Shown: positions 21,961-61,859 of the stretch, one piece after another
Layout: every line of letters starts with the position of its first letter
How positions within the stretch are numbered: the first letter of the stretch is position 1
Assembly: GCA_010909165.1 (NCBI GenBank)
Contig: MU008199.1
Span: 1-64,000, forward strand
Origin: Anthoceros angustus
Taxonomy: Eukaryota > Plantae > Anthocerotophyta
Direction of reading: 5' to 3'
Length of the DNA stretch: 64,000 nucleotides
Made by a program: the position numbers and the translations under genes
Notes under the pieces: generated by a model
Database searches by the model: none
The model's input: only the letters and a program-made list of their open reading frames with translations
Told to the model about the DNA's origin: nothing

Positions 21961-21968
21961 ATTAAGTT

Positions 21969-29640: not shown

Positions 29641-31717
29641 ATGGCTGAAGAGAGCACCGGCAGCTCAACCTCTGCCCAAGAGTCTGGTGGACCCAAGGCT
29701 GCCTTTGGGCTATCAACAACTTTACGACATGAACTGCACAAGCGGGAGGGATGCTTGTGCCTGCACAGACCACCTCCATCACCACCCTTATCCAGCCTAG
29801 AGGGAATTCGCTTAAGGTGAGCTGTTGATGTGAGATATGCAAGTTTTTTTTTGCGACAATGATGTGAGATATGGATAATCTTCCTGCATATGAACGGTCT
29901 CAGCCCATATATTAGCAGGCTGCTCACGTAAACTGTGTGCCCACTAGATTTTGAAACTTTATGCTGCCGTGTTCCTAAAGTTGGCCAGCACCTACTCGTT
30001 GAAGTCAGCATACTTTGGTGGATGGCTATGTGCTAACATTGCCAAGGACTTGTTGTATGTATACAGCGAATTACTTCTGGATCACAGGCACATTGGACGT
30101 GTGCTGTATGGCAAAATCTATATACCACCTTTCAGGATAAGTGACAGACAGTGTTTGGGGGTTGTGGAGTTCCAGGATGCCAATGGCAACAGAGGGTTAA
30201 CAGTTTCAATATGCAATGCCAGTGCCGACTTTATCGGCAGATGCTCAAAAGGGACGGAAGTGGCCATAAAAGAACCTTACTTGAAGCTCTACCCCAATCG
30301 AGTTGCGGAGCTGGTGGTTGACAATCCTGCCAACATGCACCCTTTGGCAGAAGCTTCGAAGAGGACCAGTGTAAACCAGCAAACCTTGAAGACCTACTTC
30401 AGGGGTGGCTTGGAAGGAGCCCCTCCTCCTTGCCCTGACTTCGTGGGACCTGTTCAGATTCGGATGGTTGGTGACAACAGCCCTCTAGGAAGAGGCCTGT
30501 TCCTTACTGAGAATGTGGAGGAGGGAAGGCTGCTCCTTGTCAGCAACGCCGTCGCAATAGCTCGAGCCGGGCCCAGGGGAGAAGCCAAGGGTGCCCGTTT
30601 TGGTGTGAACAAACTACCTCCAGTTCTGGAAGAACTTGTGACCAACCTGCTCAATGTGGTGAATGCTGAGCCAGAACGTCTGAACCAGATCTACTCCTTG
30701 CAGGACACAGTACTCCCTCCGACTAGCCTTCCACCAATGTCCAGGTTTGCACCAATACAGGAATTAGCATCCTCTTCGAGCCAGCAGAAGAAGCCGGATC
30801 GACCTAAACTGGACATCGGTCGGCTTCGTCGAATTGTTGGCATCAACGCATTCGAGGGAATGTACTTGCCAGCTTCCTTCGGATACAAACTGAACTACAG
30901 ATTCGTAGGCTCGCAGTCGGAAACATACTTCAACCAGGACCCCACAGATGTTGCAGGCTTCTGGATCCTTCCCTCATTCATCAACCACTCGTGCTCTCCC
31001 AACTCCTCCTGGAGGCACGTCGGAGAGGCCATGTTCATCAACGCATCCCGCGACCTCAAAGCAGGCGAGCAGATCACTGTGGCTTACGACAGCGTCTTCC
31101 TCCCTCAGCTCCGCCGCCTCTCCAACACGGCTAGGCGAGGGTTCATCTGCACTTGCGAGCGCTGCAACATGGAAAGAGCGGCTTGCTCACAGGTTCAAGA
31201 GCTCGGAATATTGGGTACCCACTTAAGCCTAGCCAGACCTGCCAACTCCCCTACCGAGAGCTTCAAGAGAGCTCAAGATATGGTCCTCGCGGTTGAAACC
31301 CTGATGGTCAGTAAAGCTGCAAACTTCTCTCCACCGCTCACCTCCAAAACCAAGAACTGGCTCAGGGCCTCCTTCGCCGGATCATACTTCCTCAACGCCC
31401 AGCTGCAGCTCATGGTAGCCCAACAGATCCCAGAATCGGTGAGGGCGCACTTAATGTGCACAAACATATCTCTGCAAGACACGGTGAAGATGGAGCTGGC
31501 CGTCCACCCCGGCAGCGAGAACAATCTCGACTCTTTCGAGCACAAGGACAACGGTCTCACATACACAGGCTGCTGTTGGGGCGGCCAGACCTTCCCTGAA
31601 TGCTGGTCCTTGGCTCTCCGGACTTGCAAGTGCATCTACGGTGCGGATGTGGATAAACAAACAGCCAGAGCCCTCATCATCTGGTACAGGAAGCTCTGGA
31701 GGTATCTTCCAACATGA
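29641..31717 (+). CDS. SET-A: SMYD-type SET-domain lysine methyltransferase with N-terminal HxG...KEPY domain, no TPR; exons 29641-29816 and 30067-31717 (~608 aa)
   Basis: GRGLFLTENV, FWILPSFINHSCSPN, RDLKAGEQITVAY, post-SET CTCERC. N-domain HRHIGRVLYG...VAIKEPYLK...VDNPANM. Phase-2 GT-AG intron 29817-30066. Confidence 0.9.
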
Positions 31718-32037
31718 AAAATCCTTAACCCTCAACCGTTGAGGGAAGAAGAAAATCCTCGTCATCCATGCCAACAACTTGGCTTCATGATGCTCTGAGT
31801 ATTTCCCGTCCTTCTCGATGTCGCAAGAAGTATTAAACACCTGCTGCTGTCTCTGATGACATGGTCGATATATTCTCACACGCTCCACATTAATCTCATC
31901 AAACAGCCTTCAACAACCGTCCTCCTCTTGGTGCCTCCTCCAGCCAGTGCTACTAGTACAAAAGACCTTCTGATCAGCCGTGTGGAATCAAACCAGAAGC
32001 ATCAAGCCCCGAAACTCGTTGTCATCCATCCGGCACA

Positions 32038-32298
32038 ATGGCAGGCTCTCTGGCTTTCCTCTTCCTCGCCATCCTCGGTGCGGCAGCCACCATTAGGGCA
32101 GCGGACGAGGACCCGCTCCAGGACTTCTGCGTGGCCGAGGACTTCATCACCGTCATCAACGGTGTAACCTGCATGGCGGAGGAGGAGGCCGCACACGCAT
32201 CCCCGGGCCACCGAGCTGCTGTTTGTGCAGTTCTCGAGCAGACCTTCGGCGTCAGTCACAAGCAAGCGAAGACGAAGGAGAAGTACTACCACGAATAG
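32038..32298 (+). pseudogene. Germin-like (cupin) gene with the core deleted
   Basis: Signal peptide plus germin N-terminal motif DEDPLQDFCVA...INGVTC, joined directly to a C-terminal-like VLEQTFGVS; the metal-binding germin boxes are absent. Confidence 0.75.
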
Positions 32299-32422
32299 GT
32301 ACCTTTCAGTTAGTACCTTACAAAGGTGTAATACCTTTCATAGGCTTTTAAGATCTCGTTAGGCTATCTCTTCACTAAGATTGTTGCTTCACTATTTTGC
32401 GGCGGCCGACCGTCTTGCAACG

Positions 32423-33767: not shown

Positions 33768-34179
33768 AAACGGTTTTGTCGGAGTCCTTCACAACGTTCT
33801 CAAGTGTGGGAGACTACGGTGAACTGCGAGTCACGTTTTTCACTCTCTCAGCACGTCATGTGGTAGCTTGGACTGCCAGGATCACCAGATCAGAGTGAGA
33901 TAGTTTTGGATCTCTATCCCCAGATGCAGGTAGCAGGTTTGAGTCCAGATAAGCGTGTCTTCGCTAGTTTAGACGGCATTTTTGAGCGTGGCAGCCAGAG
34001 GAGAGGGGATGCAGGTAGATGAACAACTACTGTCCGGTCAGCGAGAGGATAGGGGCTGCAGGTCTCATAGTATCCAATGTGACAAAACGTCAACATGGAC
34101 TGGAAATTTAGTGTTCTTAATCGACGCTTATCGGGTTCCCGAGGATTGGCTGATTGGCTTAACCGCGCAAGCGGCACAT

Positions 34180-34580
34180 CGACGTGCCCTTCAACCTGCA
34201 AGTCGAGTACGGTTACTGTCTTAACCAAGCTGGGACAGCTTTTTCACCAGTGGTAGAGGATCTGCAGATTCTGCATCTCTCACACACGACACAGTACAGT
34301 AGCAGGGCAGACAACATCTGTATTATCAGGACAGGACAAAGTTCCTGTCAAGGAGCCCAGAAGGACTGTTCACATGGGTGGGTCTCCGGGTCGTCTTCTC
34401 AAGCGACGATGGTGGAAGATTGCCGGTAAGCAGCCGGGGACGGAACGTCCGTTAGGAGGACGAGGTAGAGGTCTCCTCCCCGCCCCCCGCCGCCGAGCTA
34501 GCAGATACAAAGCAATACCGCTTCCAGAGAGTCCTCTCAGTACAATTCTCCTGAGGCACCCTGGTTGCGGCTGTGGACTG
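34180..34580 (+). pseudogene. Degenerate partial duplicate of the 5' region of the DNA methyltransferase locus
   Basis: TCAACCTGCAA..., ACACGACACAGTACAG..GGGCAGACAA, CCTGTCA.GGAGCC, TCGTCTTCTCA...CGATGGTG and TACAATTC.CCT match ~35215-35715 in the same order. Confidence 0.7.
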
Positions 34581-35019
34581 CAACTAGCATAGGTTCGACA
34601 GTTCGCAAGCGAAGAAAAGCAGTCACTTCTCTCAGATAATCCCAAATTTGTGAAGCTTTGGAACGCACGAAATCCTGCTCAATCATTGTCCCTGTGCCCA
34701 AGAATGGGCTGAGTATTGTTACTGATCGGCTGCTCAATGTCGTCCCTTTGAAGGACGTCAGAGGGTGGGTTACTTCATTGTTTGATGGACGTCCCTTTGA
34801 TGGGGAGCATTCCTTTGATGGGTGCTTTCTTGCCAGGCAAGCAATGAATTCATTCTTCTGAACTCGTCAAACTCAAGCGCAACAAACTTATAAAACAGTC
34901 CACTAGATGGACTGACTGCCGCAGGAAGATCAATAATTGTGATTTGCATTCTGCTTGCGTGTCTTCAAGGCTCGGCGAGATGGCGAGACCTAAGATGAAG
35001 GCTGGTCGAAGCTTTCAGC

Positions 35020-35379: not shown

Positions 35380-36837
35380 GTGCTGATCCTGATGCAGATG
35401 TGTCCTTGCCAACACGACACAGTACAGCAGCCGGGCAGACAAGCTCTGAAGAGTCATCTGGGCAGGGGGTCTCATCATTTCCAGAGGGACAAAATGCCTG
35501 TCAGGGAGCCTGTAGTGACTGTTCCCATGTTTGGGCCTACGGCAAAACGTAAGCTCGTCTTCTCAGAGCACGATGGTGTAACATTACCGGAGCCTGCCGA
35601 CCGGCGACGAAAGTTCCGTTCGGAGGAAGAGACAGAGGTTTCCTCCCCGCCGCCGAGCGAGCAGATAGAATTCGAAAGCGCTGCCAGGGAATCCTCCCCA
35701 TACAATTCCCCTAGGGCTTTCAGAGAGCGCGTCGGGCAAGTGAAGGCGCTCTTGCGAGGCACAAAGCCTGCCGGGTGCCCCTCCCCATTGAGCCCAGTGA
35801 AGTCCTGCGGGACGGTTACATGGAGGCCTCCTGAGGACGGGATTGTCCTCTGCGAATTGTTCGGCGGGATTGGCACGGGATTAGAGGCAGCGCTCAGATC
35901 AGGTCTGCGCATCAAGCGCTATGTCTACTGCGATGCGGACGAGGTAGCTAGACTGGTTGCCAAGGACAGATGCAGGCAGCTGCACCAGCGTTTTCCGGAA
36001 CTCTCTCCCAAAGCCTTAGGGAAGGCATTCACCACATTCCCGCAGGATGTGCGGGGGATCGAACCAGAGCATCTGAGGTCGCTGGGGCAGCTGGATCTGG
36101 TGGTGGCAGGTTGGGAGTGTCAGGGTTTCTCATCTGCGGGGCTCAAGAAGGGATTGAGCGATTCCAGGTCGGCTCTGTTTCTGAACCTAGTGCAGATTTT
36201 GGAGTGGGGGAAGGAGATGTACCCTGGTCTTGCCTTTGTGCTAGAGAACACTGCTGCGCAGTTCGACAGGGCGGAGAACATTCGTGAAGACTATGTTAAA
36301 GTCACCTCCTTCGTTGGCGAGCCATTTGTGATCGATGCTGCTCAGTGCAATTCTTTTGCTCACCGGGTTCGCAATTACTTCACAAATCTTGCTCCTGTCC
36401 CAGAGCTGAATCTTAGCCGGATGCGCACAGAGAGAGACCCCAACCTGAAGGTGAGGGATATCCTGGGGGAAGGACGGAAGACAAAGCCAGTGGTGCATGA
36501 TGAGTATAGCCCCAATTGCACTCTGCCCTTTTACAAATGCAATAAGGTGGGTCAGGAGAGGAGTGCCTGGCCCACTATTGTAGCTTACCTCGAGCCTGAA
36601 GAGTTCACTCGTGCGAATGGAAGCGTTCGCGACACGAGGGGCTCAGGAACCCCACGTTGGACTCCTCCAACTGCACAGGAGCGTGAACTTGCCATGGGCT
36701 TCAGGGCAGACACTACAGGATTTGTTGGTGAAACGCAGCGACGGAAACGTCTGGGCAGGGCAATGGACTTGAATACCCAGGTGTGGATTCTGGCTACTTG
36801 CGTTGAAATACAGCGAAGAAATCTCCGGGCTTGCTGA
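35380..36837 (+). CDS. Stand-alone non-canonical C5 cytosine DNA methyltransferase (start uncertain, possibly ATG at ~35493)
   Basis: Motif I LCELFGGIGTGLEA, II YVYCD, III FPQDV, IV DLVVAGWECQGFSSAG, V DSRSALF, VI FVLEN, VIII HRVRNYFTN, IX ERELAMGF, X RRKRLGRAMD, in canonical order; no BAH, chromo, UBA or PWWP domain. Confidence 0.9.
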   Translation: MLILMQMCPCQHDTVQQPGRQALKSHLGRGSHHFQRDKMPVREPVVTVPMFGPTAKRKLVFSEHDGVTLPEPADRRRKFRSEEETEVSSPPPSEQIEFESAARESSPYNSPRAFRERVGQVKALLRGTKPAGCPSPLSPVKSCGTVTWRPPEDGIVLCELFGGIGTGLEAALRSGLRIKRYVYCDADEVARLVAKDRCRQLHQRFPELSPKALGKAFTTFPQDVRGIEPEHLRSLGQLDLVVAGWECQGFSSAGLKKGLSDSRSALFLNLVQILEWGKEMYPGLAFVLENTAAQFDRAENIREDYVKVTSFVGEPFVIDAAQCNSFAHRVRNYFTNLAPVPELNLSRMRTERDPNLKVRDILGEGRKTKPVVHDEYSPNCTLPFYKCNKVGQERSAWPTIVAYLEPEEFTRANGSVRDTRGSGTPRWTPPTAQERELAMGFRADTTGFVGETQRRKRLGRAMDLNTQVWILATCVEIQRRNLRAC

Positions 36838-45200: not shown

Positions 45201-45609
45201 CACATGCCGACGGGGGTACGTATGGAGTATTGTAAACGGGAGAGCCGAGAGCCGAGAGCCGAGAGGACAGAGTCGAGGAAAAGGGAGGGCCAAATTGTGA
45301 AGCGAAGAATGTGTCTCCCTTCACTATTTCACCTCAGCGCGTGGGGCCGGCCCGGCAGGAAGCGCGGCCCGCGGTGAGAGCGGATTAGGTCGTGGCCAGA
45401 GAAGAGAAAAGGGGGTGGTGATTCGTGAATCGTGATGGCCGGGGTAACTGGCGTTAAGCGGTGGTTAACGGGCATTTGTGGGGCGAGGGGGTAAAGAAGG
45501 CGAGTCCGGATCCGGGCACCACGTCGGCTTTTGGGCGAATGGCGAATGCATCGCGAGAGTCCTGCTCCAGATCCGCGCGCCAAAATCCGGCACCTTCACC
45601 CAGCCCGGC

Positions 45610-48239
45610 ATGGATGCGTTTGCCAGCATGCTGATTTCCAAGCTGTGCTGCAATCCTGTCACTCTAGACAAACAATCGCTCATCGCTATGCACAACGAGG
45701 CAGCTCAGGGCCTGAAGATGCTGTCCGGAATGGGCTGGCACCCGCAGACTGTGGCCGACTCCGACGCCAGGCGCTCATCTTCCGCCGCCCTCCCCAGTCT
45801 GCGCAGAATCGGCATCAGGTAGCTCCATGGATTGCTTCGCCCGCCCGGCTGCAATGCGATGAGGCTCCAGCCCGATGCTCACGTTTTGTGGGCGTTTTTG
45901 GCAGGGATTTGACGCCCGGGAAGCGGCACCCTGGGAAGGTGCTCCACGGCCGGCTCTGCGTAAAGGCGTTCAAGATATGCGCTTTCATCCAGACCGTGTT
46001 GGAGGAGGACAGGCCGGAGACGGGGAAGGCCATCACGCTGAAAATCAGGCATTCCGGGAGCTCGGCTTCCGGGGAGGCGGAGGCGGAGGCGGAGGTGGAG
46101 CTGCTGTACCCCCTGGGGCTCAAGGTGGCCATCAAGGAGCCCTTCTTCGTGGAATTTCCGGGAGGGTTCATCGGGCTCAGGATCGATGATCCCGCGGACA
46201 TCGTGCGCCTGGAGGCGGAGAAGCCTGAACCTAATCGGGCCCTGCTGCAGAGCGAGGGGCCCGGGGACCTGGAGGTGGCGGATTTGCTGCGGAAGGAGGG
46301 GAACCTCTTCTTTGCTAACAAGGACTGGGACAAGGCAATTGAGCTGTATGGCAGGTGCATTGATGAGATTAGAGTTAGCGCTAGGGCTATCCAAGAAGAG
46401 TACGATGGCAGGGTTGAGGCGGGCAAGCCGGGTGGGGAGGGCGCCTCCAACCCTGCGGCGCACGCCAAGCGCAAGTCTAAGCAGGCCAGGACTAGGAAGA
46501 AGAAGCGGGAGCTCAAGACCGTGGCTGTTGCGCTGCAGATCAGGGAGGAATTTCAGGCCGCGGCTGTCGTTTTGCTCACTGCTGCGTATTCGAATAGAGC
46601 CGAGGCGTGGCTGAGGCTGAGGCATTTCGAGAATGCGTATCTGGATGCGCAGAGGGCGCTGTATTTCACGCCTACGCATGACAAGAGCTTGCTGAGAAAG
46701 GGGAAGGCGCTTCATGGTTTGCAGTGTTACAAATTAGCCAGTTCTTGCTACCAAGAAGTGTTGGATCTGCCTTCTGCGAAGCTGTCGGCGGAGACGCGGG
46801 AGCATATAAAGTCCAGTCTGTTGAGGGAGGCTCGGGTTGCGGAGATCCAGTCTCGCCTGGGAATTTACAACTTGGAGGATTTCTTTTTAGGGGGCTGCAA
46901 GGGGGATCCACCAGCTTGCGCTGACTTTGTGGGGCCTGTGGAGGTTCGGCATGTCAACCAGACTGTAGGAAGGGGCTTGTTTGTCACTAAGGATGTGAAG
47001 GAAGGGGACTTGCTGCTGGTTTCCAATCCGGTTGCGGTCGCTCGGGGTAGTCCAGATGTAGGGTTAGGGCACGGCTCTGCAGAAGGAGCGGAGGCTGATG
47101 TGGCTGTGCTGCAAGACTTGACGTCTCAACTCAGGGATGCAGCCAGGAGGAGCTGTCGGAAATTGGAGCAGATTTACACTCTGGCCGATGGGAACAAGGC
47201 CAGGAAGGGGGAGGTCCCTTCCATGGCCGTCTTCGCACCTCAGGAGCCCAGCACAGCCTTTCTGCAACACGATGTAAAATCCTTTTCTGGAAAGCTAGAC
47301 GTGCTGCTGGAGCGGGACCTCATTGAGGTCCAGATCGACAACCCTAGGATGCGAAGAGTAGTAGACATCAACGTGTTCGAGGGAAGTCGGTTCACGAGTT
47401 CGCCAGTCATCAATCTGGTTTGGGTTCCAGAAAGGGAGACTCCTGCTGGAATTTGGATTCTGCCCTCTTTTATAAACCACTCTTGTATACCCAACTGTTC
47501 TCGAAGGCATGTGGGTGACACCATGTTCGTCAACGCTTCCCGAGATCTTCATGCTGGAGAGGAAGTTACGGTCGCTTACTTCCATCTCTTCATACCAGCA
47601 CATGAACGAAGGTCTCTGTGTGATAAGAGGGGCTTCTGCTGCTGCTGTCCTAGGTGCACCTTGGAGCAAAGCCTAGCATCCAGAGCTCCCGCGTTGAGAA
47701 GAGTTTCACAAAGGTATGTCAAGTACTCGGCTCTGACTGATGCTGTGGGCACGTTGTCTGCTGCTTCGAAAGGTGCCAGTATGCGACGCGATCTCAACCA
47801 GTTTCTGGAGTCTAATCATCTGCAGCTCAACGCTGAAAGCAAGAATTGGATACGGGCTTCCTATATAAGACCCTACCTCCAGGCCATCGTCCAGGTTCTG
47901 CACTCGAGAAGGGTGACGGGGGCCAAAACTCCTATCACCACTCAGTCCTTTGACATGGTGTTTGATGCCATGATATCCGTCCATCCAGGCTCAGAGGACA
48001 CACTTTCCATGCTTTGTCACCCTTTTTCTTATGGAACAGCAGATGTTTCTCCTAGTAAGAGCAAGGCCTGGGCAGATCTAGCTCTCCGGATCTGCAGATG
48101 TGTGTACGGCTCTTTCAAAGAATCTACTGGTGAGGCCATTTTAAAACATCACACTGAGAGTTCTTTGAGATACATGGAGAAACAGGTTGCTTCTCACTTA
48201 GATACCTTTAGATTCGAATGGTTTTGTGCTGTCAAATAA
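45610..48239 (+). CDS. SET-B: N-domain + TPR + SMYD-type SET protein; exons 45610-45818 and 45905-48239 (~847 aa)
   Basis: KRHPGKVLHG...VAIKEPFF...RIDDPADI; TPR LRKEGNLFFANKDWDKAIELY, YSNRAEAWLRL, KSLLRKGKAL; SET GRGLFVTKDV, IWILPSFINHSCIPN, AGEEVTVAY, CCCPRC. Phase-2 intron 45819-45904. Confidence 0.92.
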
Positions 48240-48780
48240 GACATGGTTTCCTGTCGGATTGATTTCTGACTCTTGCTCAGGACCTCCAAATGTTTCCGGA
48301 AAAACAAAAAACTGTTGTGCAAGAATTTTGGTTGTTTTGAGCACTTCCTCGTAGAGCCCCTTGCTAGCCTTGACAGACTGATCTTTCTGTTGCTTGGTTG
48401 CCCTGAGAAGTTGCTCCTGAGTCACTCTGAAGCTTTGCTCTGATACACACTAAGAATCTACCTGCCTGCTATCCACAACAGCGCACATACATGATTAGGG
48501 ACCATGGATCACCTAGTTGATGAGGTCTGCTGGGCGGGCCTTCAAAGCAAGCAACACAAAGGTGCAAGCCCTACTGAGTTTGGTCACGCACAAATTTGTG
48601 AGCTCCTAAACGTTCCAAACACATTCCTCAGAGCCCTCTTTTGGACACGTCTGATGAAATGTTGTGCCTCTGAAAAACTGCTTTCATTCTGTTGGCTGGA
48701 AGGATTGACCTAAACACTGGGAAAAACTCATTCCACTAGGAAGTGCATGTCTTCAATCTTCACCCCGATCCGCCCTAACT

Positions 48781-48830
48781 GGTCTGTCCGCCGGAGTGGT
48801 CCGCCGGAGTGGTCCGCCGGAGTGGTCCAC
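48781..48830. repeat. 13 bp tandem repeat GGTCCGCCGGAGT, about 3 copies
   Basis: Directly visible upstream of SET-C. Confidence 0.8.
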
Positions 48831-49012
48831 CGTGGCCCTCCTCAGTTGCAACTTCTGCTGATTCGAGAGGTAGGTTGAGCGTCCACGAGTGGAGCCGCCA
48901 TTGTGACTTGAAATTCTCACGGTTGCTTTTGTAGTCTGCGGTTGGAACATCATCGCTTGGTGCACTGTTTTGCTTAGGGGCAGGACCAGCTCAGATTGCA
49001 TAGGGCAGCACT

Positions 49013-50482
49013 GTGTGGAAGGGCACGGAAGGGTTCGCTGTCCTTAAAATGATGCTGGGTACTGGGCGGTGGCTGCTTCAACAGAATTGGTACCCAGTCT
49101 CCGTGGTGAAAAGCGGCCGAAACTTCTACTTCACGTGCTCTCGTCCAAGGAAGGTATCTACCTTCGCAATGTGTTCACTTTCCCAGGTTCGCCCGAACGT
49201 GGACCCTGTAAGCTCAACTGCAGAGTCTGAGAATTCTCTTGCAGCTTTCAACCTAGATGAATATTTTGTGAAGGGCTGCGTTGGACCTGCTCCACAGTGC
49301 CCTGACTATGTGGGGCCTGTAGAAATTAAGATGACCGGTGGAGTTGTTTCAGTTGGTCGTGGATTGTTCGTCACCAGGGATGTGAGGGAAGGTGACTTGC
49401 TAGTGGTAGGCCAAGCTCTGGCTATGGCTCACCGTGGGGATTCCGAGGAACAGCAGAAAGCCAGCAAGCAGGAAATAGCACGCCAGCTTATGGAGATGGC
49501 CGTCAGTAGCCCCTGGAAAATGAGACAGGTTTATTCTCTATCTGATGGTCACGGTGATCATGAACGTGAGGTCCCCTCGCTGGACTTGGTCGCACCTGCT
49601 CCTCCGCAAGGGCTGTCTCTGGGAGCCCAACCTGTGGATTTTGTTCGGATCTGTCGTATCGTACAAGCTAATGTGTTTCATGTGCAAAATCCAAGCTGGA
49701 GAACGTGCTGGAGTCGAGGGGACGCCCCGTCGAGCGTTCTAGGGATATTTTTGCTTCCCTCTTTCATTAACCATTCCTGCGCACCTAATGCTTCGTGGAA
49801 GGTTTTGGGTAAAGCTATGTTCATACAGGCTTGCCGTGATATAAAATCTGGAGAACAGGTCACCATTTCGTACATGGACACGTTTCAGCCAGAGCAACAG
49901 AGGGGAGATATATGTAGATCGAGGGGTTTCACCTGCCATTGTCCCAGATGTACATTAGAGAGGACTGTGGAGTCGCAATCGTCTAGTGCCTATGATCTGA
50001 AATATCAATTTGGGGTGTACCTTCAATCACTATCTACACTGCAGACTGGACCAGCGAATGCTCAAGGGCAGGCAAGGAGACGTTTAGCTGAAGTGAGTGC
50101 AAAGATGTGTGAGAGTGTGGAACGGGTTGTTCAGTTGCCCGAGCTAAAGTTAGATTGGGAAACTCGGAACTGGCTGCGGGCTTCCTATTGCAAACTGTAT
50201 GTGATGCAGCTGTTCAACACTTTTGAGACGAGGAACAATGCGCTAGCTGCTAAATCTCTTGACACTGTACTCGAGATGGTGCTTGCTTCTCATCCTGGTG
50301 TGGAAATAGGTCTGCAACTGTCATGTGTCCCGTGGCTTATGAAGAACACGAACTTCCCGGAACACAAGATCAAAGAGTGGCACGACTTGTCTCTCCTGTT
50401 TGTGAAATGTATCTATGGAGATCTGAAGTCATCAACCAAAGAAGCTATCGTCAAGGCTTACAAGGCATCTGCTAGCTTTTAG
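49013..50482 (+). CDS. SET-C: SMYD-type SET protein lacking N-domain and TPR (first ATG ~49049; possible transit peptide)
   Basis: CPDYVGPVEI, GRGLFVTRDV, IFLLPSFINHSCAPN, DIKSGEQVTISY, CHCPRC, NWLRASY; single uninterrupted ORF. Confidence 0.9.
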   Translation: MWKGTEGFAVLKMMLGTGRWLLQQNWYPVSVVKSGRNFYFTCSRPRKVSTFAMCSLSQVRPNVDPVSSTAESENSLAAFNLDEYFVKGCVGPAPQCPDYVGPVEIKMTGGVVSVGRGLFVTRDVREGDLLVVGQALAMAHRGDSEEQQKASKQEIARQLMEMAVSSPWKMRQVYSLSDGHGDHEREVPSLDLVAPAPPQGLSLGAQPVDFVRICRIVQANVFHVQNPSWRTCWSRGDAPSSVLGIFLLPSFINHSCAPNASWKVLGKAMFIQACRDIKSGEQVTISYMDTFQPEQQRGDICRSRGFTCHCPRCTLERTVESQSSSAYDLKYQFGVYLQSLSTLQTGPANAQGQARRRLAEVSAKMCESVERVVQLPELKLDWETRNWLRASYCKLYVMQLFNTFETRNNALAAKSLDTVLEMVLASHPGVEIGLQLSCVPWLMKNTNFPEHKIKEWHDLSLLFVKCIYGDLKSSTKEAIVKAYKASASF

Positions 50483-51369
50483 GAAAAGCCAAGGGTGAAG
50501 CTGGTTCGAACTTGTGTCTCTACTGTAATCCAAGGAGCTTTCGAAGAAGCTTGCGGCCTGTTGATGTGGGCACGGTGTTGCCCTTCAACCTGGAGTTTCC
50601 CTCTTGTGCTCAATATCATCTGATCGGTGGAATTCTCTTGTTGGCCTGGGAGAAAGCTTGTAATTAAAATGTGAAGAGTGGACACCAGAGGGAACTCCGG
50701 ACTTTGTTTCTTGTTTTAGCTGATTTGTTTTCATGGACATCTTATGCCCTAGCACGGTGATCGCATATTGTGACATCCGCTAGTGGCTCAGCTCTAGCAA
50801 AGCGATGACAGGTGTTTGAAGGACATGCGTCTACGGATATTAATGTTAACCTGGCTCTATCGATTTCCAGCCAGGCCTGCTTCTGTGAGAGGTGAACGAA
50901 ATTGTCTGAGTGTTATCTTCAGCTTCTTCTTTTTAATAAGCAACTTTTTTCCAGGAGGGTGGTCTTCTTTACTGATGGACTGCCGCCACCATCTGGTGGT
51001 AGCTCATTCTGATGGGAGTCCTTGCCGAAGTCTTTTCAGTGGGTGAGGTGGAGTGCTGCCTTTCTAGGGTTGGCCAGGCTCAGTCCAGGAGTCTGCGGGA
51101 TAGCTGTACGCTGGATCCTCCTACTGGCTCTTATGAGGTCATCAGCGATCACATGGTGGTATTCCCTTTCCCTTTTCTAGTTGAGGTGAGAGACGTGGAT
51201 GGCTGTTCCCATTGCAGAAGAGTGTAGCCTTCAAATAAATATCTGCTCCCTGAGTCTAAGGTGGGCAGCCTCTTTAGATACACGCAACCCTTTGGGCAGG
51301 AGCCGCAGTTGAATAACGTCCATGGACTGCTCCATGTATAGAGCTAGAATCCACAAAGATCCAAGCTTG

Positions 51370-53830
51370 TCAAAAGGTCGGCACTTCCTCGTAGTAACCT
51401 TCAAGCAGTTTCCTATAGTACTCAGGCTCCCTGCCTTGCCCGTACCGGCGCTCGCAGACTTTGAGAGCAGTGTCCAGAATCTCCTGTAACGGATTAAAAA
51501 TTCCATTCCGGTCGCATATCTGGAAGTTGTTCCCGAAGTAGTCTCCCCACAGACACTGAGCAAGAACGGAGAGTGCCAGCTCGGAGCCTGGATCAGTCTG
51601 GAGCATCGCTCCCAGCACTGCGCTAATCGGGAAAATGCTAAGAGCCTCTCCACGCTCAAACCCAGGAGACAGCGAGTGATGGCATGCAGCCAGGTAGGAA
51701 TACAAGAACGATGATCTAAGCCAGGACTTCTCAACTTCGCCCAGGCGAAGCAGCTCTCCATCCAGCAATTTTTGAAGTCGGTAGGATGCAGTCACAAGGT
51801 CGTCTGAATAGCAACCCACACCCACTAACATCCGAGGCCCTGTGGACTGCATCCTCTTCATCAGCACGTAGGTGTAAGTCCTGCTCAGCTGCCGGAAGGC
51901 GGGATAATCCCTAACAATCTTTGCCTCAAACACACAGCGGGCACAAGCACACTCACTACTCCAGGACATCTCATTGCACAATCTCCTGCGCTCGGCCAGG
52001 GGCATGAATATGTCGCAGCACGGGATTGACAGAACCTCATCAGCTTCGATGTCCTTGGAGGCGCGAACCACCACCACATTGTTGTTGTCCTCCAGTACGT
52101 AGCAGCAGTTTGGAGCGCAAGAGTGCGTCATGTAAGAAGGGTAACGCCAGCATCCCGCACCCCAGAATGGTGCAGAGCTGACATACGGGCTGGGGTCTGG
52201 CGCGTCGTAAATGGCCTCCTCCCATTCTCGTAGCACCGTCCGTACATACTGCATGTGGAAGTTCCGAATGAAGAGCAATTTCTGCTCCGGATTGGCTCTA
52301 AAGAAGGCGGCACCCACGTTACCGAGCTGGTACATTCCAGGGAATTTGTCTGAATCCTGGAAGATTGCAGGCGGGGCCTGCAGATGTGTCTGTAGTTGCT
52401 GTTCCAATTCTTGGCACAAGCTCTTGTGAGCTTCTATGCTGCTGTCGTCTGCCAGCTCTGGATTGAAATTGGAAAGATTGTAGGTGTGTGCTGTCGCAGG
52501 GCTGTTCACCATACGTGTCCCTTCTTTCACAGGTATTTGCGCCATGTACTTTCTGTACTTCTTGAAGGTGCTGTCAGGGGCGTCCGTTACCTTTAGCCAT
52601 GGGAACTCATAATCCTCCACGCCAGGCACATAGTCCATTGCAGGTTGAGTGAAAATCCGCAACATATCTGAACTGTATGCAGGCGAGGCAAAGAGCTCCT
52701 CAACATCCTCTCGAGTCCCGGCATTAAAATAAATCACTGCCCCCGCCACACCGACCTTGATGGATTCCCTCACGCTTACCAGCGTATCCAGACTGCGGTC
52801 TGTCTGCTTCATTAACTGCTGGTAATACTTCATCTTGTTTGACGCGCATATGTCCATCTGCTGCGCATGCCTGAAGAGGAAATCTGAAAATCGTTGATGG
52901 AAGCTGTGAATGACTAGAAATGTGCATGGCCAACAGACATCCGCGGACTCGGCAGGAGACTTAAAACTGTCCTCCAGCAAATGTAGGAAAAAGTGCATCG
53001 CAACATTCACGAAGTTTCTTCCATCCCTTATTGCTTCTATAAGGCTTTCATCCGCCACATCGCGGGTCCTAGCCATGCATTGCAGACTGCAAACGTACTC
53101 AACCGCATCCGAATAGGGGAATTCCCCATAAAGATCGTTGCACACATCACACTTGCGGTCTGTGGACGCCGCCACCCGTTGATTACTCCTCCATGCAAGA
53201 ATACCAGCAATATGGAGCTTCTTCTCCACAGGCTCAGGATCTGCACCAGGTTGGTCGTCTGGGTAGGGCGGCTGTACATGCCCAGGATCTGCACTGGGTT
53301 GGGGGAGTGAGAGAGGCAGCGGGAATAATACATCATGAATTTCCCGTGGGTCGGCAATCCGTAAGCCCACAGTCCCATCCAAGAACGTAACGTGGAAGGG
53401 GTTCGTGATATCCACCACGCTGCCTTTCTGATAGAGGCCCAGGGTGTGATTAAGAAACGGAGCTATTCTGAGCTGTAGTAGTAGGCCATTAACACCTTCC
53501 AGCAAAGTAACTATGGATGTCAAATAACAAGGCTCCACAACCAACGTCCCACGGATAAATCTCCCGCGGTGACGACAAAACGGAACGAGCTCCCTGCACA
53601 CACAAACATTTCAGAGCTTTTCAACTGCACATGCTACAGCAGAAACCAGTCCCATCACCAGTCACAGGCTAGGGAGCTCACTGGAATTCCATCAGAGCTT
53701 CCGGAGGGAACCAATACGGCGGTAATGCCTCCACAACGGCTTCCCTCTCTTGCAATCCATGATTTGGCACAGACCTAAGCATAAGTTGGCCATGCCGTTC
53801 CAGCATGCGCTCTTTGTATGGCGTTACCAT
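51370..53830 (-). CDS. SET-D: divergent SET-family protein, probable pseudo-enzyme; exons 53830-53682 and 53593-51370
   Basis: N-domain RHRGRFIRG...ITNPFH...RIADPREI; CDVC..x15..CSLQC; YPSYMTHSCAPNC; DIEADEVLSIPCCD (no catalytic Tyr); CACARC; WLRSSF. Phase-2 intron 53594-53681. Confidence 0.85.
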
Positions 53831-55324
53831 GATTTCCTCGAGACTTCGTGGCAAAGATTGCAGATCTATGCAATTACGTATCTCAGATGGCACTCACTAG
53901 GTACAGCCCGCAAGGGTAGAGATAGAGAACCCCCAGGCACGCTTCTCGAGGGTCGCAGTCCCGATGATCTCCATACATAAACAGCGACTGGCTGATGGGC
54001 GCAAACAAACCGCTCATCAGCTCTCACAACCGCAAATCAGGAGCCACCGTACTGTTCTTGCTGCGGGTGCAAAAATGTAGTGGGAGATTCAAATCTGAAT
54101 AAACGGGCATCGGGAGAGGGACATGGATCGGCGGCGACTGTATATGTATAAGCGGGCCCACGAAGGGCTCTGTTGCTGCAGCTGGGCTTGGTGGTGCAGT
54201 CGTTTGACACGGTCCCACGTCTGGCGATGGCGGTTTAAAGTGTTAAACCCTAAATGCTTGGATGAAGGAGTGGCAATTAGAGGCAGAGCGATGTATGCAT
54301 GGATGTTGTCCGGCCCCAGGTTGGTGGCCAGCAGCTGTGCTTTCCGGGATGTCCTCTTGAAAAGTGGCTTGGTGAGCAGTCAGAGTCGGCAGTAATGCTC
54401 GATCTGCCAATGCACGGCAGCTTGGTGGGGAATATTTGTTCCTGCCTTTCCTGCGGTGGTTGGAACTGGGGAGGATCATGGCGTTTGTTGAGGCTGAGAG
54501 CTTTATCGGATGGTTGTGGGTAGATTTTAGAGGGGAAGTACGCTTCGACACAGGCCGATATATCGGGAGATGGAGCAAGTTGGCATAGTTATGAGAATGA
54601 CGGCAGGAGTGTAGGCCTTGTTTGCTCGTGATCTTAGCTTCACGTTGAAGATATGTTCTCTGGCCTCCGTCTGTTACCTTTATCTGTAATAAGGCAAGTG
54701 CTCTGATGATGGAGGTCAGTTTGAGCAGGGTGGGATGGTCGTTTCGGTTCAATGTTGTCACCAACTCACGCTTTGCACGTCTGCGAATACATTTTAGGAT
54801 TGGATTCTGAACGTAGTGTTCGGAAAACATTTGCTATGCAGGACCTTGAAAATGAGGGGACCAGGCTCTTGCCACTGGAAAGTGGTCTTTTTGAGCTACC
54901 AGACAGGTCAGTTTTTCTTTACCTTGAAGGATGGACAGCTCTGCTCTTCTCCGGTGAGTGACCTATCCAGTCTGAAGGATTTACTGGAATCTGTGGGTTG
55001 CAGACGTGAAGTATTATAACACAGGTCTTCTGTTTGCATTCTGTGTCACAAGGGTAGTATGTATACTGAAGGGGAGTTTTTGGTTTCTGTTCAGGGTCTT
55101 CTAAACCTTGTGATGTCTTCTACCATTTCATCCCCCAATGCGTTTTGCCAGCCATGGAATACCACCCGGCGTTCCATTGGGGTTGTGTAAACAAACTCGT
55201 TTAGTATTCTGCACTTTTTTGCTGTGCATGGTTGAAGCCAGCGCAGGGGGCTTCAAATCAGCCGCTGGGGAGGTACGTTTACACCCCATTCATGAAAGAA
55301 AGGTCATCCGTTGGCTGTTTGCCA

Positions 55325-55765
55325 TCCGGAGTTGTTTCACTTGGTCGTGGATTGTTAGACACCAGAGATGTGAATGAAGGTGACTTGCTAGTAGTTGTTC
55401 CTCGTCTCAAAGTGTTGAACAGTCGCATCACATATGGTTTGCTGTAGGAAGCCCGCAGCCAGTTATAAGTTTCCCAATCTAACTTTAGCTTAGCAGACTG
55501 AACAGGCCGTTCCAGACTCTCACACATCATTGCACTCACTTCAGCTAAACGGACTGCAGGCACACCCCAAACTGATACCTCAGATCATAAGCACTAAGAC
55601 GATTGTGACTCCACGGTCCTCACTAACCTACATCTGGACAAGGGCAGGTGAAACCCCTCGATATACACGTATCTTCCCTCTCGTTGAAACGTGTCCATGT
55701 ACGAAAATGGTGACCTGTTCTCCAGATTTTATATCAGGGCAAGCCTGTATGAACATAGTTATGTT
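55325..55765. pseudogene. Rearranged pseudogene copy of SET-C (short forward piece plus inverted 3' piece)
   Basis: 55328-55392 matches ~49340-49403 forward; 55395-55760 is the reverse complement of ~49810-50238 (LKLDWETYNWLRASY on the minus strand). Confidence 0.85.
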
Positions 55766-56261
55766 CAACAACTTCTTTTTAATAAGCACTTTTTTCCAGG
55801 AAGGAGGTCATTTTTACTGATAGACTGCCGCCATCTGGTGGCTGCTCTTCTGATTGGAGTCTTTGCCAAAGTCTTTTCTGTGGGTGAGGTGGAGTGCTGC
55901 GTTTTAGGATTGGCCAGGATCAGTCCAGGAGGCTGCGGGATAGCTGTATGCTGGATCATGCTACAGGCTTCTATGAGGTCATCAGCGATCACATGGTGGT
56001 ATTCCCTTTCCCTTTTCTAGTTGAACTGTCAGTACAAGTCAGCCCAAGGGCCACACCTCTACAGTTGTGGTGTGCCTTTCTAAACGAAAGCAGGTCTTCC
56101 TCTAAACGAAGAAGCTGCCCACTATCCGTGAGCTGAGACACGCGGATGGCTGTTCCCATTGCAGAAGAGTATACCCTCAAATCAATATCTGCTGCATAAC
56201 CTCCATTGACTGCTACATGCATGTAGCAGAAAGCCACAAAGGTCCAACCTGGCGTTGCTTG

Positions 56262-58784
56262 TCAAAAGGGCGACAGTTCGTCGTAGTAATATTCAAGTAC
56301 ATGCCGGTAGTCCTCAGGCTTGCTGCCTTGCCCGTACCGGCGCTCGCAGACTTTGAGAGCAGTGTCCAGAACATCCTGTAACGGATTAAAAATCCCATTG
56401 CGGTCGCATACCTGGAAGTTGTTCCCGAAGTAGTCTCCCCACAGACAATGAGCAATAACGGAGAGTGCCAGCTCGGAGCCTGGATCAGTCTGGAGCATCG
56501 TTCCCAGCACGGCCCCAATCGGGAAAATGCTATCAGCTTCTCCGCACTCAAACAAACCAGACTCCCAGTGATGGCATGCAGCCAAGTAGGAATACAAGAA
56601 CGATGATCTAAGCCAGGACTTCTGAAGTTCGCCCAGGCGAAGCAGCTCTCCATCCAGCAATTTTTCCAGAGTGTAGGATGCAATTACAAGGTCGTCTGAA
56701 TAGTTTTCCTGAGGCACAAACGTCGCAGGCCCTGTGGACTGCATCCTCTTCATAAGCACGTGAGTGTAAGTCCTGCTCAGATGCCGGAAGGTGGGGTAAT
56801 CCCTAACAATCTCTGCCTCAAACACACAGCGGGCACAAGCACACTCACTACTCCAGGACATCTCATTGCACAATCTCCTGCGCTCTGCCAGGGGCATGAA
56901 TATGTCGCAGCACGGGATTGACAGAACCTCATCAGCTTCGATGTCCTTGGAGGCGCGAACCACCACCACCTTGCTGTTGTTATTCAGTACGTAGCAGCAG
57001 TTTGGAGCGCAAGAGTGCGTCAAGTAAGAAGGGTAACGCCAGCATCCCGCAGCCCAGAATGGTGGAGAGCTGGCATACGGGCTGGGCTCTGGCGCGTCGG
57101 AAACGGCCGTCTGCCATTCTCGTAGCAGCGTCCGCACATACTGCATGCGGAAGTTCCGAATGAAGAGCAATTTCTGCTCCGGATTGGCTCCAAAGTAGGC
57201 GGCACCCACGTTACCGAGCTGATACATTCCAGCGAATCTGTATGCATCCTGGAAGATCGCATGAGGGGACTGCAGATGTGTCTGTAGTTGCTGCTCCAAT
57301 TCTTGACACAAGCTCTTGTGAGCTTCTATGCTGCTGTCGTCTGCCCGCTCTGGATTGAAATTGGAAAGATTGTAGGTGTGTGCTGTCGCAGGGCTGTTCA
57401 CCATACGTGTCCCTTCTTTCACAGGTATTTGCGCCATGTACTTTCTGTACTTCTTGAAGGTGCTGTCAGGGGCGTCCGTTACCTTTAGCCATGGGAACTC
57501 ATAATCCTCCACGCCAGGCACATAGTCCATTGCAGGTTGAGTGAAAATCCGCAACATATCTGAACTGTATGCAGGTGAGGCAAAGAGCTCCTCAACATCC
57601 TCTCGAGTCCCGGCATTAAAATAAATCACTGCCCCCGCCACACCGACCTTGATGGATTCCCTCACGCTTACCAGCGTCTCCAGACTGCGGTCTGTCTGCT
57701 TTATTAACTGCTGGTAATACTTCATCTTGTTTGACGCGCATATGTCCATCTGCTGCGCATGCCTGAAGAGGAAATCTGAAAATCGTTGATGGAAGCTGTG
57801 AATGACTAGAAATGTGCATGGCCAACAGACATCCGTGGAATCGGCAGGAGATTTAAAACTGTCCTCCAGCAAATGCAGGACAAAGTGCATCGCAACATTC
57901 ACGAAGTTTCTTCCATCCCTCATGGCTTCTATAAGGCTTTCATGCGCCACTTCGCGGATCCTAGCCATGCATTGCAGACTGCAAACGTACTCAACCGCAT
58001 CCGAATAGGGGAATTCCCCATAAAGATTGTTGCACACATCACACTTGCGGTCTGTGGATGCCGCCACCCGTTGATTACTCCTCCATGCAAGAATACCAGC
58101 AATATGGAGCTTCTCCTCCACAGGCTCAGGATCTGCACCAGGTTGGTCGTCTGGGTAGGGCGGCTGTACATGCCCAGGATCTGCACTGGGTTGAGGGAGT
58201 GAGAGAGGCAGCGGGAATAATGTATGACGAATTTCCCGTGGGTCGGCAATCCGTAAGCCCACAGTTCCATCCAAGAACCGCACATAGAAGGGGTTCGTGA
58301 TAAACACCTTGCTGCCTTTCTGATAGAGGCTCATGTCATGATTAGGAAATGAAGCTATTCTCAGCTGTAGTAGTATCCCATCAGTATCTTCCAGCAAAGT
58401 AAATATGGATGTCACATAGCAAGGCTCCACAACCAGCGTCCCACGGAAGTATTTCCCGCGGTGAAGAAAAATCGGAAAAACTAGCAAGTCTCTGCAACAC
58501 ACAGCGAACAGTTCAGAGCTTTTCAACAGCACATGCTACAGAAAAACCCAGTCCACCACCAGCCACAGGGGAAGAGCTCACAGGAATTTTAGCTCAGCTG
58601 CGTGAGGGAACAGATCCTGCGGTGTTGCCTGCACAATGGCTTTCCTCTTCAGCAATCCATGATTTGGCACCGACCTAAGCATAAGTTGGCGATGCCGTTC
58701 CAGCATGCTCTCTCTGTAATCCGGATCCAAATACCAGGGAAGTGGTGGAAATGGCCTCCAGGACTGGCTCTCTCCATCCATCAT
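56262..58784 (-). CDS. SET-E: tandem paralogue of SET-D; exons 58784-58582 and 58491-56262
   Basis: Collinear and highly similar to SET-D; YPSYLTHSCAPNC, EVLSIPCCD; phase-2 intron 58492-58581. Confidence 0.85.
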
Positions 58785-59709
58785 TTCCTCGAGACTTTGT
58801 GGCAAAGATTGCAGATCTATACAAATACGGATCTCAGATTGCACTCACCAGGTGCAGCCCGTAAGGGTGAAGTTAGAGAACCCCCAGGCAGGCTTCTCGA
58901 AGGTCGCAGTCCCGATGATCTCCATACATAAACAGCGACTGGCTGGTGGGCGCAAACACACTGCTCATCAACTCTGACAACCGCAAATCGGGAGCCACCG
59001 TACTGTTCTTGCTGCGGGTGCAAAAAAGCAGTGGGAGATTCAAATCTGAATAAACGGGCATCGGGAGAGGGACATGGATCGGCGGCGACTGTATATGTAT
59101 AAGCGGGCCCACGGAGGGCTCTGTTCCTGCAGCTCAGCTTGGTGAAACAGTCGTTGGACACGGTCCCACGTCTGGCGATGGCGGTTTAACGTTTGAAACC
59201 CTAAATGCTTGGATGAATCATTGGCCATTACCGGCAGAGCGATCTATGTATGGATGTTGTCCGGCCCCACCTTGGTGGCCAGCAGCTGCGCTTTCCGGGA
59301 TGTCCTTTCTCTGCGGTGGTTGGAATTGGGGAGGATCATGGCGTTTGTTGAGGCTGGGAGTTTATCGGATGGTTGTGGGTAAATTTTAGAGGGGATGTAC
59401 GCTTCGACAGGCAGATATATCGGGAGATGGAGCAAGTTGGCATAGTTCTGTGAATGACAGCAGGAGTGTAGGCCTTGCTTGCTGGTGATCTTAGTTTCAC
59501 GTTGAAGATGCATTCTCCGGCCTTTGTCTGTTACCTTTATCTGTAATAAGGCAAGTGCTCTGATGATGGAGGTGAGTTTGAGCAGGGTGGGATGGTCGTT
59601 TCGGTTCAATGTTGTCAACAACTCACGGTTTGCATGTCTGTGAATACATTTTAGGATTGGATTCTGGTAGTTTTCGAAGAACATTTGCTATGCAGGACCT
59701 TGAAAATGA

Positions 59710-60500
59710 AGGGCCACTCTTGCCACTGGAAGGTGGTCTTTTTGAGCTAGCAGACAGGTCAGTGTTTTTTGACCTTGAAGGATGGAGAACAGCTCTGCTC
59801 TTCTCTGGTGAGAGACCTGTCCAGTCTGAAGGATTTACTGGAATCTCCAGGTTGCAGACGTGAAGTATTATAACACAGATCTTCTGTTTGCATTCTGTGT
59901 CACAAGTTTGTTTGAGATAGTTGGGCAGTATGTATACTGAAGGGGAATATTTGGTTTCTGTTCAGGGTCTTCTAAACCTGGACCAGGCTCTTGCCACTGG
60001 AAGGTGGTCTTTTTGAGCTAGCAGACAGGTCAGTTTTTTTTTACCTTGAAGGATGGAGAACAGCTCTTCTCTTCTCTCTGAAGGATTTACTGGAATCTCC
60101 GGGTTGCAGACGTGAAGTATTATAACACAGGTCTTCTGTTTGCATTCTGTGTCACAAGTGTGTGTGAGATAGTTTGGTAGTATATATATCGAAGGGGTGT
60201 TTTTGGTTTCTGTTCAGGGTCTTCTAAACCTGGACCAGGCTCTTGCCACTGGAAGGTGGTCTTTTTGAGCCACCAGACAGGTCAGCTTTTTTTGACCTTG
60301 AAGGATGGAGAACAGCTCTGCTCTTCTCTGGTGAGTGACCTGTCCAGTCTGAAGGATTTACTGGAATCTCCGGGTTGCAGACGTGAAGTATTATAACACA
60401 GGTCTTCTGTTTGCATTCTGTGTCACAAGTGTGTTTGAGATAGTTGGGTAGTATGTATATCGAAGGGGAGTTTTTGGTTTCTGTTCAGGGTCTTCTAAAC
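59710..60500. repeat. ~250 bp unit in three tandem copies
   Basis: CTCTTGCCACTGGAAGGTGGTCTTTTTGAGC...GTTCAGGGTCTTCTAAACCT occurs three times here and once in the first duplication unit (~54860-55110). Confidence 0.9.
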
Positions 60501-60719
60501 CTTGTGATGTCTTCTACCATTTCATCCCCCAATGCGTTTTGCCAGCCATGGAATATACCACCCGGCGTTCTATTGGGGTTGTGTAAACAAACTCGTTTAG
60601 TGTTCTGCACATGTGATGTGCATGGTTGAAGCCAGCGCAGGGGGCTTCAAATCAGCCGCTGGGGAGGTACGCTTACACCCCATTCATGAAAGAAAGGTCA
60701 TCCGTTGGCTGTTTGCCAT

Positions 60720-61800
60720 CTAGAGTTGTTTCAGTTGGTCTTGGATTGTTCGTCACCAGAGATGTGAATGAAGGTGACTTGCTAGTAGTTCTCCAAGCTC
60801 TGACTATGGCTCACCCCGGGGATTCCGAGGAACAGCAGATAGCCAGGAAACAGGAAATAGCACGCCAGCTTATGGAGATGGCCGTCCGTAGCCCCTGTTA
60901 ATTGAGACAGGTTTGTTCTTTTCTTATGGTCATGGTGATCAGGAACGTGAGGTCCCCTCGCTGGACTTGGTCGCACCTGCTCCTCCGCAAGGCTAGTCTC
61001 TCAGAGCACAACCCGTGGATTTTGTTCGCGTTTGTCTTATCGTACAAGCTAATGTGTTTCATGAGCTGAAGTTCTCCCTCCAAAGTTTCAAAAACCAAGC
61101 ATAAGTGACAAACCGCTGACTGAAACCCTCGCATTGCCACTTATATTTTGCCCATATTTCGAACTTTGTAAATGTGTCTGGAAGGTTAAACACATCCACA
61201 TTCGGAAGCCTCTCCGCCATGAACACGAATGTGTTGTCCATCCACGCGATGGCACCCTGTGCATATGTAGACAGAAGGACACAAAATGTAACGACTGAAA
61301 GGATTAAGGACAATACCTTGGTCGACTTTAGCCGTCGTGTTTCTAATTGTCGTTTTCAATCCTACGCAAAGCGAGCACGTGGAGAACCTATTGGACTTTG
61401 GAATCTTCACCCTTGTACTTTGTTCTGGCTGCACATTCCCCATGTTTGAGGTCGTCAGTACCTCGTATTGTCGGGAGTTTGAATGTCGCAAGTGTTGTGC
61501 TTTATTCATCCTGTATGTGTGTCAATTTTTCTTGCCTCCCTCTTGCATTAACTATTCTGGCACACCTGATGCTTCGTGGAAGGTTTTGGGTTTTGGGTTT
61601 TGTCTGAAATAAGATCTGGAGAACAGGTCACCATTTTCATACATGGACACGTTTCAACGAGAGCAACAGCGGGGAGATATGTATGTATCGAGGGTTTCAA
61701 TTGCCCTTGTCCAGATGTAGATTTAGAGAGGACTGTGGCGTCTTAGTGCTTATGTTTGAAATATCAGTTTGGTGTGTACCTGCAATCCGCTTAGCTGAAG
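60720..61800 (+). pseudogene. Pseudogene copy of SET-C interrupted by an insertion
   Basis: GLGLFVTRDVNEGDLLVVLQALTMAHPGDSEEQQ...PC*; resumes at ~61525 with FLPPSCINYSGTPDASWKVLG; stops and frameshifts. Confidence 0.88.
61064..61520 (-). mobile_element. Transposase-like fragment inserted in the SET-C pseudogene
   Basis: AWMDNTFVFMAERLP...LPDTFTKFEIWAKY...WFLKLWRENF and VKIPKSNRFSTCSLC resemble CxxC-containing DNA-transposon-associated proteins; family not established. Confidence 0.5.
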
Positions 61801-61859
61801 TGGCTAAAACAAATGGTGTTCTCCGCATTTGGTCTTTTTGAGGATATGCTAAGCCCACA

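Follow-up and report, generated by a model that had tools for sequence, protein, structure and literature searches.

The first 64,000 nucleotides of contig MU008199.1 of Anthoceros angustus (assembly GCA_010909165.1), referred to here as the window, carry five intact SET genes, named A to E, which span 29.6-58.8 kb by six-frame translation and Pfam. The cluster is probably a lineage-restricted radiation of the tetratricopeptide repeat (TPR)-SET family, made up of SMYD-fold, MYND-less, S-adenosylmethionine (SAM)-dependent non-histone protein-lysine methyltransferases, of which B would dock on Hsp70/Hsp90. The family itself is known, and what is new here is a probable oligonucleotide/oligosaccharide-binding (OB) fold, a predicted chaperone clamp, a form with a transit-peptide-like leader and predicted pseudoenzymes with an orphan insert. 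The cluster offers a natural deletion series for the study of domain roles, with one form devoid of the TPR, another devoid of both OB domain and TPR, and a putatively dead enzyme with a new insert.

A first-pass annotation of this DNA had described five intact SET genes and two pseudogenes in four architectures (A, B, C and D/E) with common C-terminal motifs, and the open reading frames (ORFs), the Pfam matches and the comparison of the window with itself by tblastn and blastn agree with this description. Gene B contains an N-terminal domain (N-domain), a TPR module, a split SET domain, a post-SET region and a helical C-terminal domain (C-domain). Gene A has the same organisation without the TPR, while gene C lacks both N-domain and TPR and combines a transit-peptide-like leader with the split SET and the C-domain. 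The catalytic motifs are intact in these three genes, each of which carries the GxG SAM loop, NHS, the catalytic Tyr and the post-SET cysteines, with the SET domain split over about 170-200 residues and no MYND match in Pfam. D and E consist of the N-domain, an unrelated middle, the second SET half and the C-domain, and all five genes align over the C-domain with its motif WxRxS...PG...CxxxYG. The TPR missing from A, C, D and E is interpreted as a secondary loss. With pairwise identities of 32-36%, A, B and C are old paralogues; D and E share 86% of their amino acids, and their identity with A-C in the second SET half and the C-domain is 23-32%. Accessory domains of the standard plant histone lysine methyltransferase classes (I-V) had been reported as missing, and indeed no SRA, PWWP, PHD, AWS or pre-SET domain was found in the Pfam scan.

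With regard to the gene models, the SET-matching ORF of A (29948-31717, forward strand) extends to a gene at 29641..31717 with exons 29641-29816 and 30067-31717 around an intron at 29817-30066 (608 aa). The ORF of B (45495-48239, forward) belongs to a gene at 45610..48239, with exons 45610-45818 and 45905-48239 and an intron at 45819-45904 (847 aa). For C (ORF 49004-50482, forward), the transcript covers 48703..51522, with a 5'-untranslated intron at 48870-48977 and the coding sequence at 49049-50482 (477 aa). D and E lie on the reverse strand: D (ORF 51370-53610) at 51370..53830, with exons 53830-53682 and 53593-51370 and an intron at 53681-53594 (790 aa), and E (ORF 56262-58535) at 56262..58784, with exons 58784-58582 and 58491-56262 and an intron at 58581-58492 (810 aa). 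In A, B, D and E, a phase-2 GT-AG intron directly precedes the N-domain, and joining the exons restores an open frame from an ATG. Exons were joined for this reading-frame check only, and single-exon ORFs served as queries in database searches and folding.

Gene B and its family

The best matches of the model of B in the PDB are SMYD2 and SMYD3, in line with the SMYD-like SET domain proposed earlier. The modelled protein shows a SMYD2/3-like fold joined to a TPR of co-chaperone type and, at the N-terminus, an additional beta domain. Human SMYD2 and SMYD3 share with B the split SET, NHSC, GEE-x-x-x-x-Y, the post-SET zinc site and a helical C-domain, and human SMYD4 has an N-terminal TPR. SMYD proteins differ, however, in the MYND finger placed inside the SET domain, which is absent in A-C, and in lacking the N-terminal OB-like domain that B adds.

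The TPR module of B (46272..46859, forward) is closest in structure to the TPRs of the co-chaperones FKBP38/52, Sgt2, HOP and CHIP. It carries a predicted Hsp70/Hsp90-type dicarboxylate clamp formed by R129, N133, N230, K260 and R264 (numbered from 45906), at the clamp positions of HOP TPR1. This five-residue R/K-N-N-K-R clamp is kept in B and in most of the family. B is under strong purifying selection (pN 0.16, pS 0.65) and has a 70% identical orthologue in another organism, in run SRR33208241.

The N-domain of B (45906..46230, forward), with a predicted beta-beta-beta-alpha-beta-beta order and weak Pfam TTC5_OB matches, is probably a TTC5-like OB fold. Its topology in the AlphaFold2 (AF2) model, b1-b2-b3-alpha-b4-b5, fits such a fold, and its similarity to TTC5_OB in the ESM protein language model is 0.89. 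Weak matches to TTC5_OB (PF16669) were obtained in 16 of 52, with single domains below the cut-off; one homologue with three N-domain copies clears it, in sum only (39.5 against 30 bits). A PDB sequence search with the N-domain profile returned no significant match. TTC5/STRAP, which is weakly similar to the N-domain in sequence and in the language model, also combines TPR and OB and binds ribosomes close to the exit tunnel (PMC10403363), but its OB domain follows the TPR instead of preceding it and it has no SET domain. The N-domain is also found together with Kelch, MYND and RING in database protein P0115, in a three-fold repeat of N-domain and SET in P0030, and within a 3043-aa TPR-SET protein, P0023, and is thus a mobile module.

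The first-pass annotation had regarded the combination of N-domain, TPR and SET as unusual and mainly fungal, a view that is not supported. Homologues with N-domain, TPR, SET and C-domain occur in Sphagnum, Ceratodon, Marchantia ('MpATXR5'), Calypogeia, Diphasiastrum, Ceratopteris, Ginkgo (three) and Cryptomeria (several, one of them named 'methyltransferase FGSG_00040' by RefSeq). Versions without the N-domain were found in Riccia, Calypogeia, Cryptomeria, Taxus and Phoenix (P0045, also named FGSG_00040), and relatives with N-domain and SET in the green alga Nannochloris and the fungi Colletotrichum and Cadophora. The architecture of B is thus widespread and multicopy, with domain loss, in non-flowering land plants, and the bryophyte, fern and gymnosperm proteins resemble the cluster in its architecture, its multiple copies and its N-domain-less copies. 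The local radiation is similar to those of other non-flowering plants. The top sequence matches are plant proteins at 31-34% identity; the fungal match scores lower, at 28%. A search of the ESM Atlas with the model of B ranked streptophyte TPR-SET clusters first (TM-scores of 0.87 and 0.84 by the hit), followed by clusters from Ascomycota and Basidiomycota in which the N-domain is covered and residues 1-761 are aligned. Fungal relatives with the N-domain architecture, also anticipated earlier, were therefore recovered both in these clusters and in Colletotrichum, where P0007 has the full N-domain, TPR and SET at about 28% identity. A profile search with the family alignment yielded mostly generic TPR proteins.

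The label ATXR1 is taken here to stand for At1g26760 (ATXR1/SDG35), in line with the first two of the papers cited next. A fungal TPR-SET family has been defined with which Arabidopsis At1g26760 clusters weakly (Veerappan et al. 2008, PMC2474616), and ATXR1 has been listed among SMYD candidates as lacking a zinc finger (PMC4521844). A survey of Archaeplastida recognised a TPR class of plant SET proteins, biochemically poorly characterised and most abundant in pteridophytes (PMC5725981). The angiosperm ATXR1/FGSG_00040 type shares with the cluster the TPR, the split SET without MYND, the post-SET CxCxxC and the helical C-domain with WxR(A/S)S, and Phoenix P0045 has TPR, SET-C and C-domain motifs in common with B. 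Nevertheless, the angiosperm type has no N-domain and its copy number stays low and stable, at two per genome in rapeseed (PMC13210918), whereas here the N-domain is retained and the family has radiated. Likewise, the fungal family was called fungus-specific and no N-terminal domain was described for it (PMC2474616), whereas it is found here across non-flowering plants. No description of the architecture with N-domain, TPR, SET and C-domain was found in the literature searched.

Two trees were computed, one with 43 rows over the N-domain, SET and C-domain columns under a mixture model, and one with 27 rows under a simpler model without mixture, which was also used for approximately unbiased (AU) tests. 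A, B and C cluster with four paralogues of run SRR33208241, with support of 98/96 (43 rows) but only 80/55 (27 rows), which supports the lineage-restricted radiation that had been suggested. In that run, the orthologue of B adjoins an A-like gene and a second pair lies on another contig; the pairs are arranged in tandem (L001:1703-7154) and divergently (L002:1341-7291), and in one member the N-domain is missing, as is most of the C-domain. In the 43-row tree, the liverwort copies and the gymnosperm copies each radiate separately. The moss N-domain copies of Sphagnum and Ceratodon group with the N-domain-less copies of Taxus and Phoenix (98/95 and 89/94 in the 43-row and 27-row trees), which suggests a loss of the N-domain in the ATXR1 type of seed plants. 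Grouping with conserved single-copy plant orthologues of the same architecture, or a lack of expression, had been named as findings that would speak against the first-pass interpretation. Moss copies do group with the ATXR1 type, yet A-C form a separate clade with the SRR33208241 paralogues and are not one-to-one orthologues of the angiosperm ATXR1-type gene, and expression of C is seen, so that the interpretation is refuted in part only. The same intron as in A, B, D and E, preceding the N-domain, also occurs in three SRR33208241 genes, while among the four other loci checked those of Ceratodon, Diphasiastrum and Calypogeia are intronless and that of Marchantia has an intron inside the N-domain. 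This shared intron favours a single lineage-restricted origin that includes D and E. Judged from sequence, these relationships place the host among the non-seed land plants.

Genes C, D and E and the history of the array

RNA contigs were compared with the window over 48700-54500. A run from the same sample contains a 2712-base contig of C at a depth of 84, from which the 108-base GT-AG intron has been spliced out, and C is therefore transcribed. Its transcript runs to 51522 and overlaps in antisense the last 150 coding bases of D (51370-51522), possibly as a natural antisense pair. Orthologues of C at about 92% identity are present in runs of related organisms, where an in-frame 39-base duplication lies within the predicted transit peptide (49124-49162 of the window). 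The leader resembles a transit peptide, which points to a putative organelle targeting of C.

In D and E, the first SET half and the GxG strand are missing, Thr replaces the Asn of NHS, and Cys replaces the catalytic Tyr. In SMYD3, Asn205 contacts the cofactor and any change of Tyr239 kills activity (PMC3105404). Because of the lost SET half and these two replacements, D and E are predicted to be pseudoenzymes. A divergent first SET half hidden before the zinc finger was considered and rejected, as the G-I-L-A strand is followed after only 18 residues by the first cysteine, and GxG is absent.

The orphan middle, located in E at 57066..58145 (reverse strand), comprises about 360 aa, 92% identical to the middle of D, with a mostly helical prediction at low confidence. 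It opens with C-x2-C-x16-C-x3-C, in which the cysteines are spaced like MYND ligands 1, 2, 5 and 6, so the finger is degenerate, with four of the eight zinc ligands kept (C1, C2, C5 and C6), and lies outside a complete SET; ESM features indicate zf-MYND at 0.88, as a lead only. Searches of Pfam, NCBIfam and PHROGs with the middle gave nothing convincing, a word-index search with E gave no match, and the insert was found in none of the retrieved bryophyte, fern and gymnosperm family proteins. When E was compared by HMMER with 1.84 billion representatives, only the N-domain and the SET/C-domain were matched among the best 150 of 300 matches. The AF2 model of E is unreliable over residues 1-487, and the fold search confirmed only the SMYD-like C-terminal part. 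The GC content at third codon positions (GC3) of the middle is 0.58, which is host-like.

Between D and E, dN/dS is 0.87 overall and about 1.1 in the C-domain, the latter on 15 synonymous differences; in this comparison the middle is 97% identical, whereas the N- and C-domains are 74-78% identical. This mosaic divergence fits gene conversion together with relaxed or patchy diversifying selection. The reading frames of D and E are maintained: their 161 substitutions in 2.2 kb include no stop (P = 0.0022 in a simulation of neutrality) and are accompanied by one in-frame indel, whereas the neighbouring copies of C, at similar divergence, have several frameshifts. Furthermore, the post-SET cysteines, the C-domain motifs and the splice sites have been preserved even along a branch with 1.77 changes per site. 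Pieces resembling D/E, about 88-94% identical, were detected in runs of related organisms; these are short, have low depth and in one case contain part of an intron.

The two pseudogenes are copies of C. The first (55328..55758, reverse) is 5'-truncated and partly inverted, with a direct piece at 55328-55396 and an inverted, frameshifted piece at 55395-55758, and is followed by a copy of the 3' flank of C at 55758-56193. The second (60723..61802, forward) is 5'-truncated, with pieces at 60723-61066 and 61529-61802. Both pseudogenes contain frameshifts and stops, are 76-90% identical to C at the DNA level and start at one common position of C, near 49340. The array has a tandem unit of about 5 kb, in which C faces D, followed by a spacer, a truncated copy of C facing E, another spacer and the second truncated copy. 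The repeat layout and the shared truncation point indicate that both deaths of C copies and the D/E pair derive from one or two duplications of C+D. These duplications of the convergent unit are recent, at about 90% DNA identity, and the local duplication with gene death inferred in the first-pass annotation is thus supported. Short tandem repeats occur in the spacer at 59717-60502 and to the right of the cluster at 61925-62902 (about 260 bp in three copies, and units of 42-50 bp).

Proposed mechanism and competing explanations

In the proposed mechanism, B would be the ancestral form, docking through its TPR clamp on the C-terminal EEVD tail of Hsp70/Hsp90, with the OB-like domain as a possible RNA-, ribosome- or protein-binding module, and would methylate non-histone substrates, for example chaperone clients or translation factors. 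Cooperation with Hsp90 and activity on non-histone targets are both known for SMYD enzymes (PMC4307310). A would be a retargeted derivative that lost the TPR, and C another in which an organelle-targeting leader replaced OB and TPR. From D and E the first SET half and the catalytic residues would have disappeared, the orphan MYND-bearing insert would have been added, and the two may act as non-catalytic binders or scaffolds if expressed, while the two pseudogenes would be debris of the recent tandem duplication of the convergent C+D pair. Several points weigh against this picture. The OB assignment is built on sub-threshold Pfam matches and secondary structure, and the targeting of C is proposed from composition alone. 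No contig of D itself was present in the same-sample run, and no spliced D transcripts were seen over the region compared. D and E stand on a long branch apart from A-C in the free tree, with an unresolved backbone; by the AU tests, a clade of A-E (p 0.34) is not rejected, nor is a grouping that joins A-C to the outgroup (p 0.40). ATXR1-type proteins appear in plant SET surveys, with no substrate or function found for them in the literature, and no report of enzyme activity or substrate was found for any member of the TPR-SET family. A further-reaching version, which we regard as rather doubtful, takes OB-TPR-SET proteins as an old class of chaperone- or ribosome-docked lysine methyltransferases, trimmed to ATXR1 in flowering plants, and represented here by an organelle-targeted C, arranged tail-to-tail with the maintained pseudoenzymes D and E, whose insert would confer a new binding role, possibly as regulators or decoys in interactions with microbes.

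Resemblance to defence gene clusters had also been suggested, and a methylation system of defence or symbiosis with arms-race turnover, in which D and E serve as decoys or guards against effectors that attack C-type enzymes or their substrates, would suit intact pseudoenzymes beside a predicted active paralogue, the mosaic of a C-domain dN/dS of about 1.1 with a nearly identical middle, and the independent expansions with domain loss in several plant lineages. It is nonetheless unlikely: a dN/dS near 1 on so few synonymous differences fits relaxed selection and gene conversion equally well, purifying selection on B is strong, one or two duplications of a single C+D unit make up the recent turnover, and no NLR, kinase or LRR genes were found among the neighbouring ORFs scanned with Pfam. 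Unless a defence role comes to light, the cluster is of interest mainly to specialists in SET-domain evolution. At the other extreme, D and E might be young, nearly neutral chimeras bound for pseudogenisation, with only A-C functional and the rest ordinary duplication debris. The overall dN/dS of D/E, the lack of a D contig where C reaches its depth of 84, the antisense C transcript over the 3' end of D and the absence of a D/E-type homologue among the database protein matches listed are all compatible with this. There is little probability in it, however, given the stop-free frames beside frameshifted C copies, the cysteines, motifs and splice sites kept along the long branch, and the D/E-like pieces in related organisms.

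Horizontal transfer of the A-E clade from a fungal donor, independently of the ATXR1-type genes that other plants carry, would explain why fungal proteins share the full architecture, and the AU test allows A-C and their SRR33208241 relatives to group with two outgroup sequences, one of them from Colletotrichum. Yet the plant matches outscore the fungal one, the architecture extends across non-flowering plants and to a green alga, in free trees A-C fall with plant sequences and not with the fungal outgroup, and GC3 is near that of the host DUF7780 gene, which makes a transfer very improbable. The 'ATXR' name would instead suggest nuclear histone methyltransferases; histones are among the proteins methylated by SMYD1-3 (PMC4307310), and an OB-like domain could bind DNA. 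This is improbable in turn, since Pfam detects no chromatin-reader domain, B has a co-chaperone-type TPR and C a transit-peptide-like leader, and the category is noted in a survey as not well characterised biochemically (PMC5725981). For the preferred reading as a TPR-SET radiation, the probable OB fold and the predicted chaperone clamp in the putative ancestral form open the way to concrete tests and argue against treating these proteins as histone enzymes.

Neighbouring elements in the window

A and B are 14 kb apart, with an ORF and a gene of other kinds in between. An intronless C5 cytosine methyltransferase ORF (35380-36837, forward), with a decayed partial copy at 34161-34552, reads WECQG where C5 methyltransferases usually have PPCQG. 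Retrotransposon-borne DNA methyltransferases (DNMTs) occur in charophytes and dinoflagellates (PMC5890265). The second is an intact DUF7780 gene (37407-39269, reverse; 620 aa, E 7e-64), probably an ordinary plant gene. Upstream of the cluster, two related retroelement copies with 83-89% identity occupy 20732-26842, with an RVT_1 match at 25553-26269 (reverse). An ORF at 18413-19288 (forward) has weak right-handed beta-helix (NosD/Beta_helix) matches and is possibly one exon of a secreted pectin-lyase-like protein.

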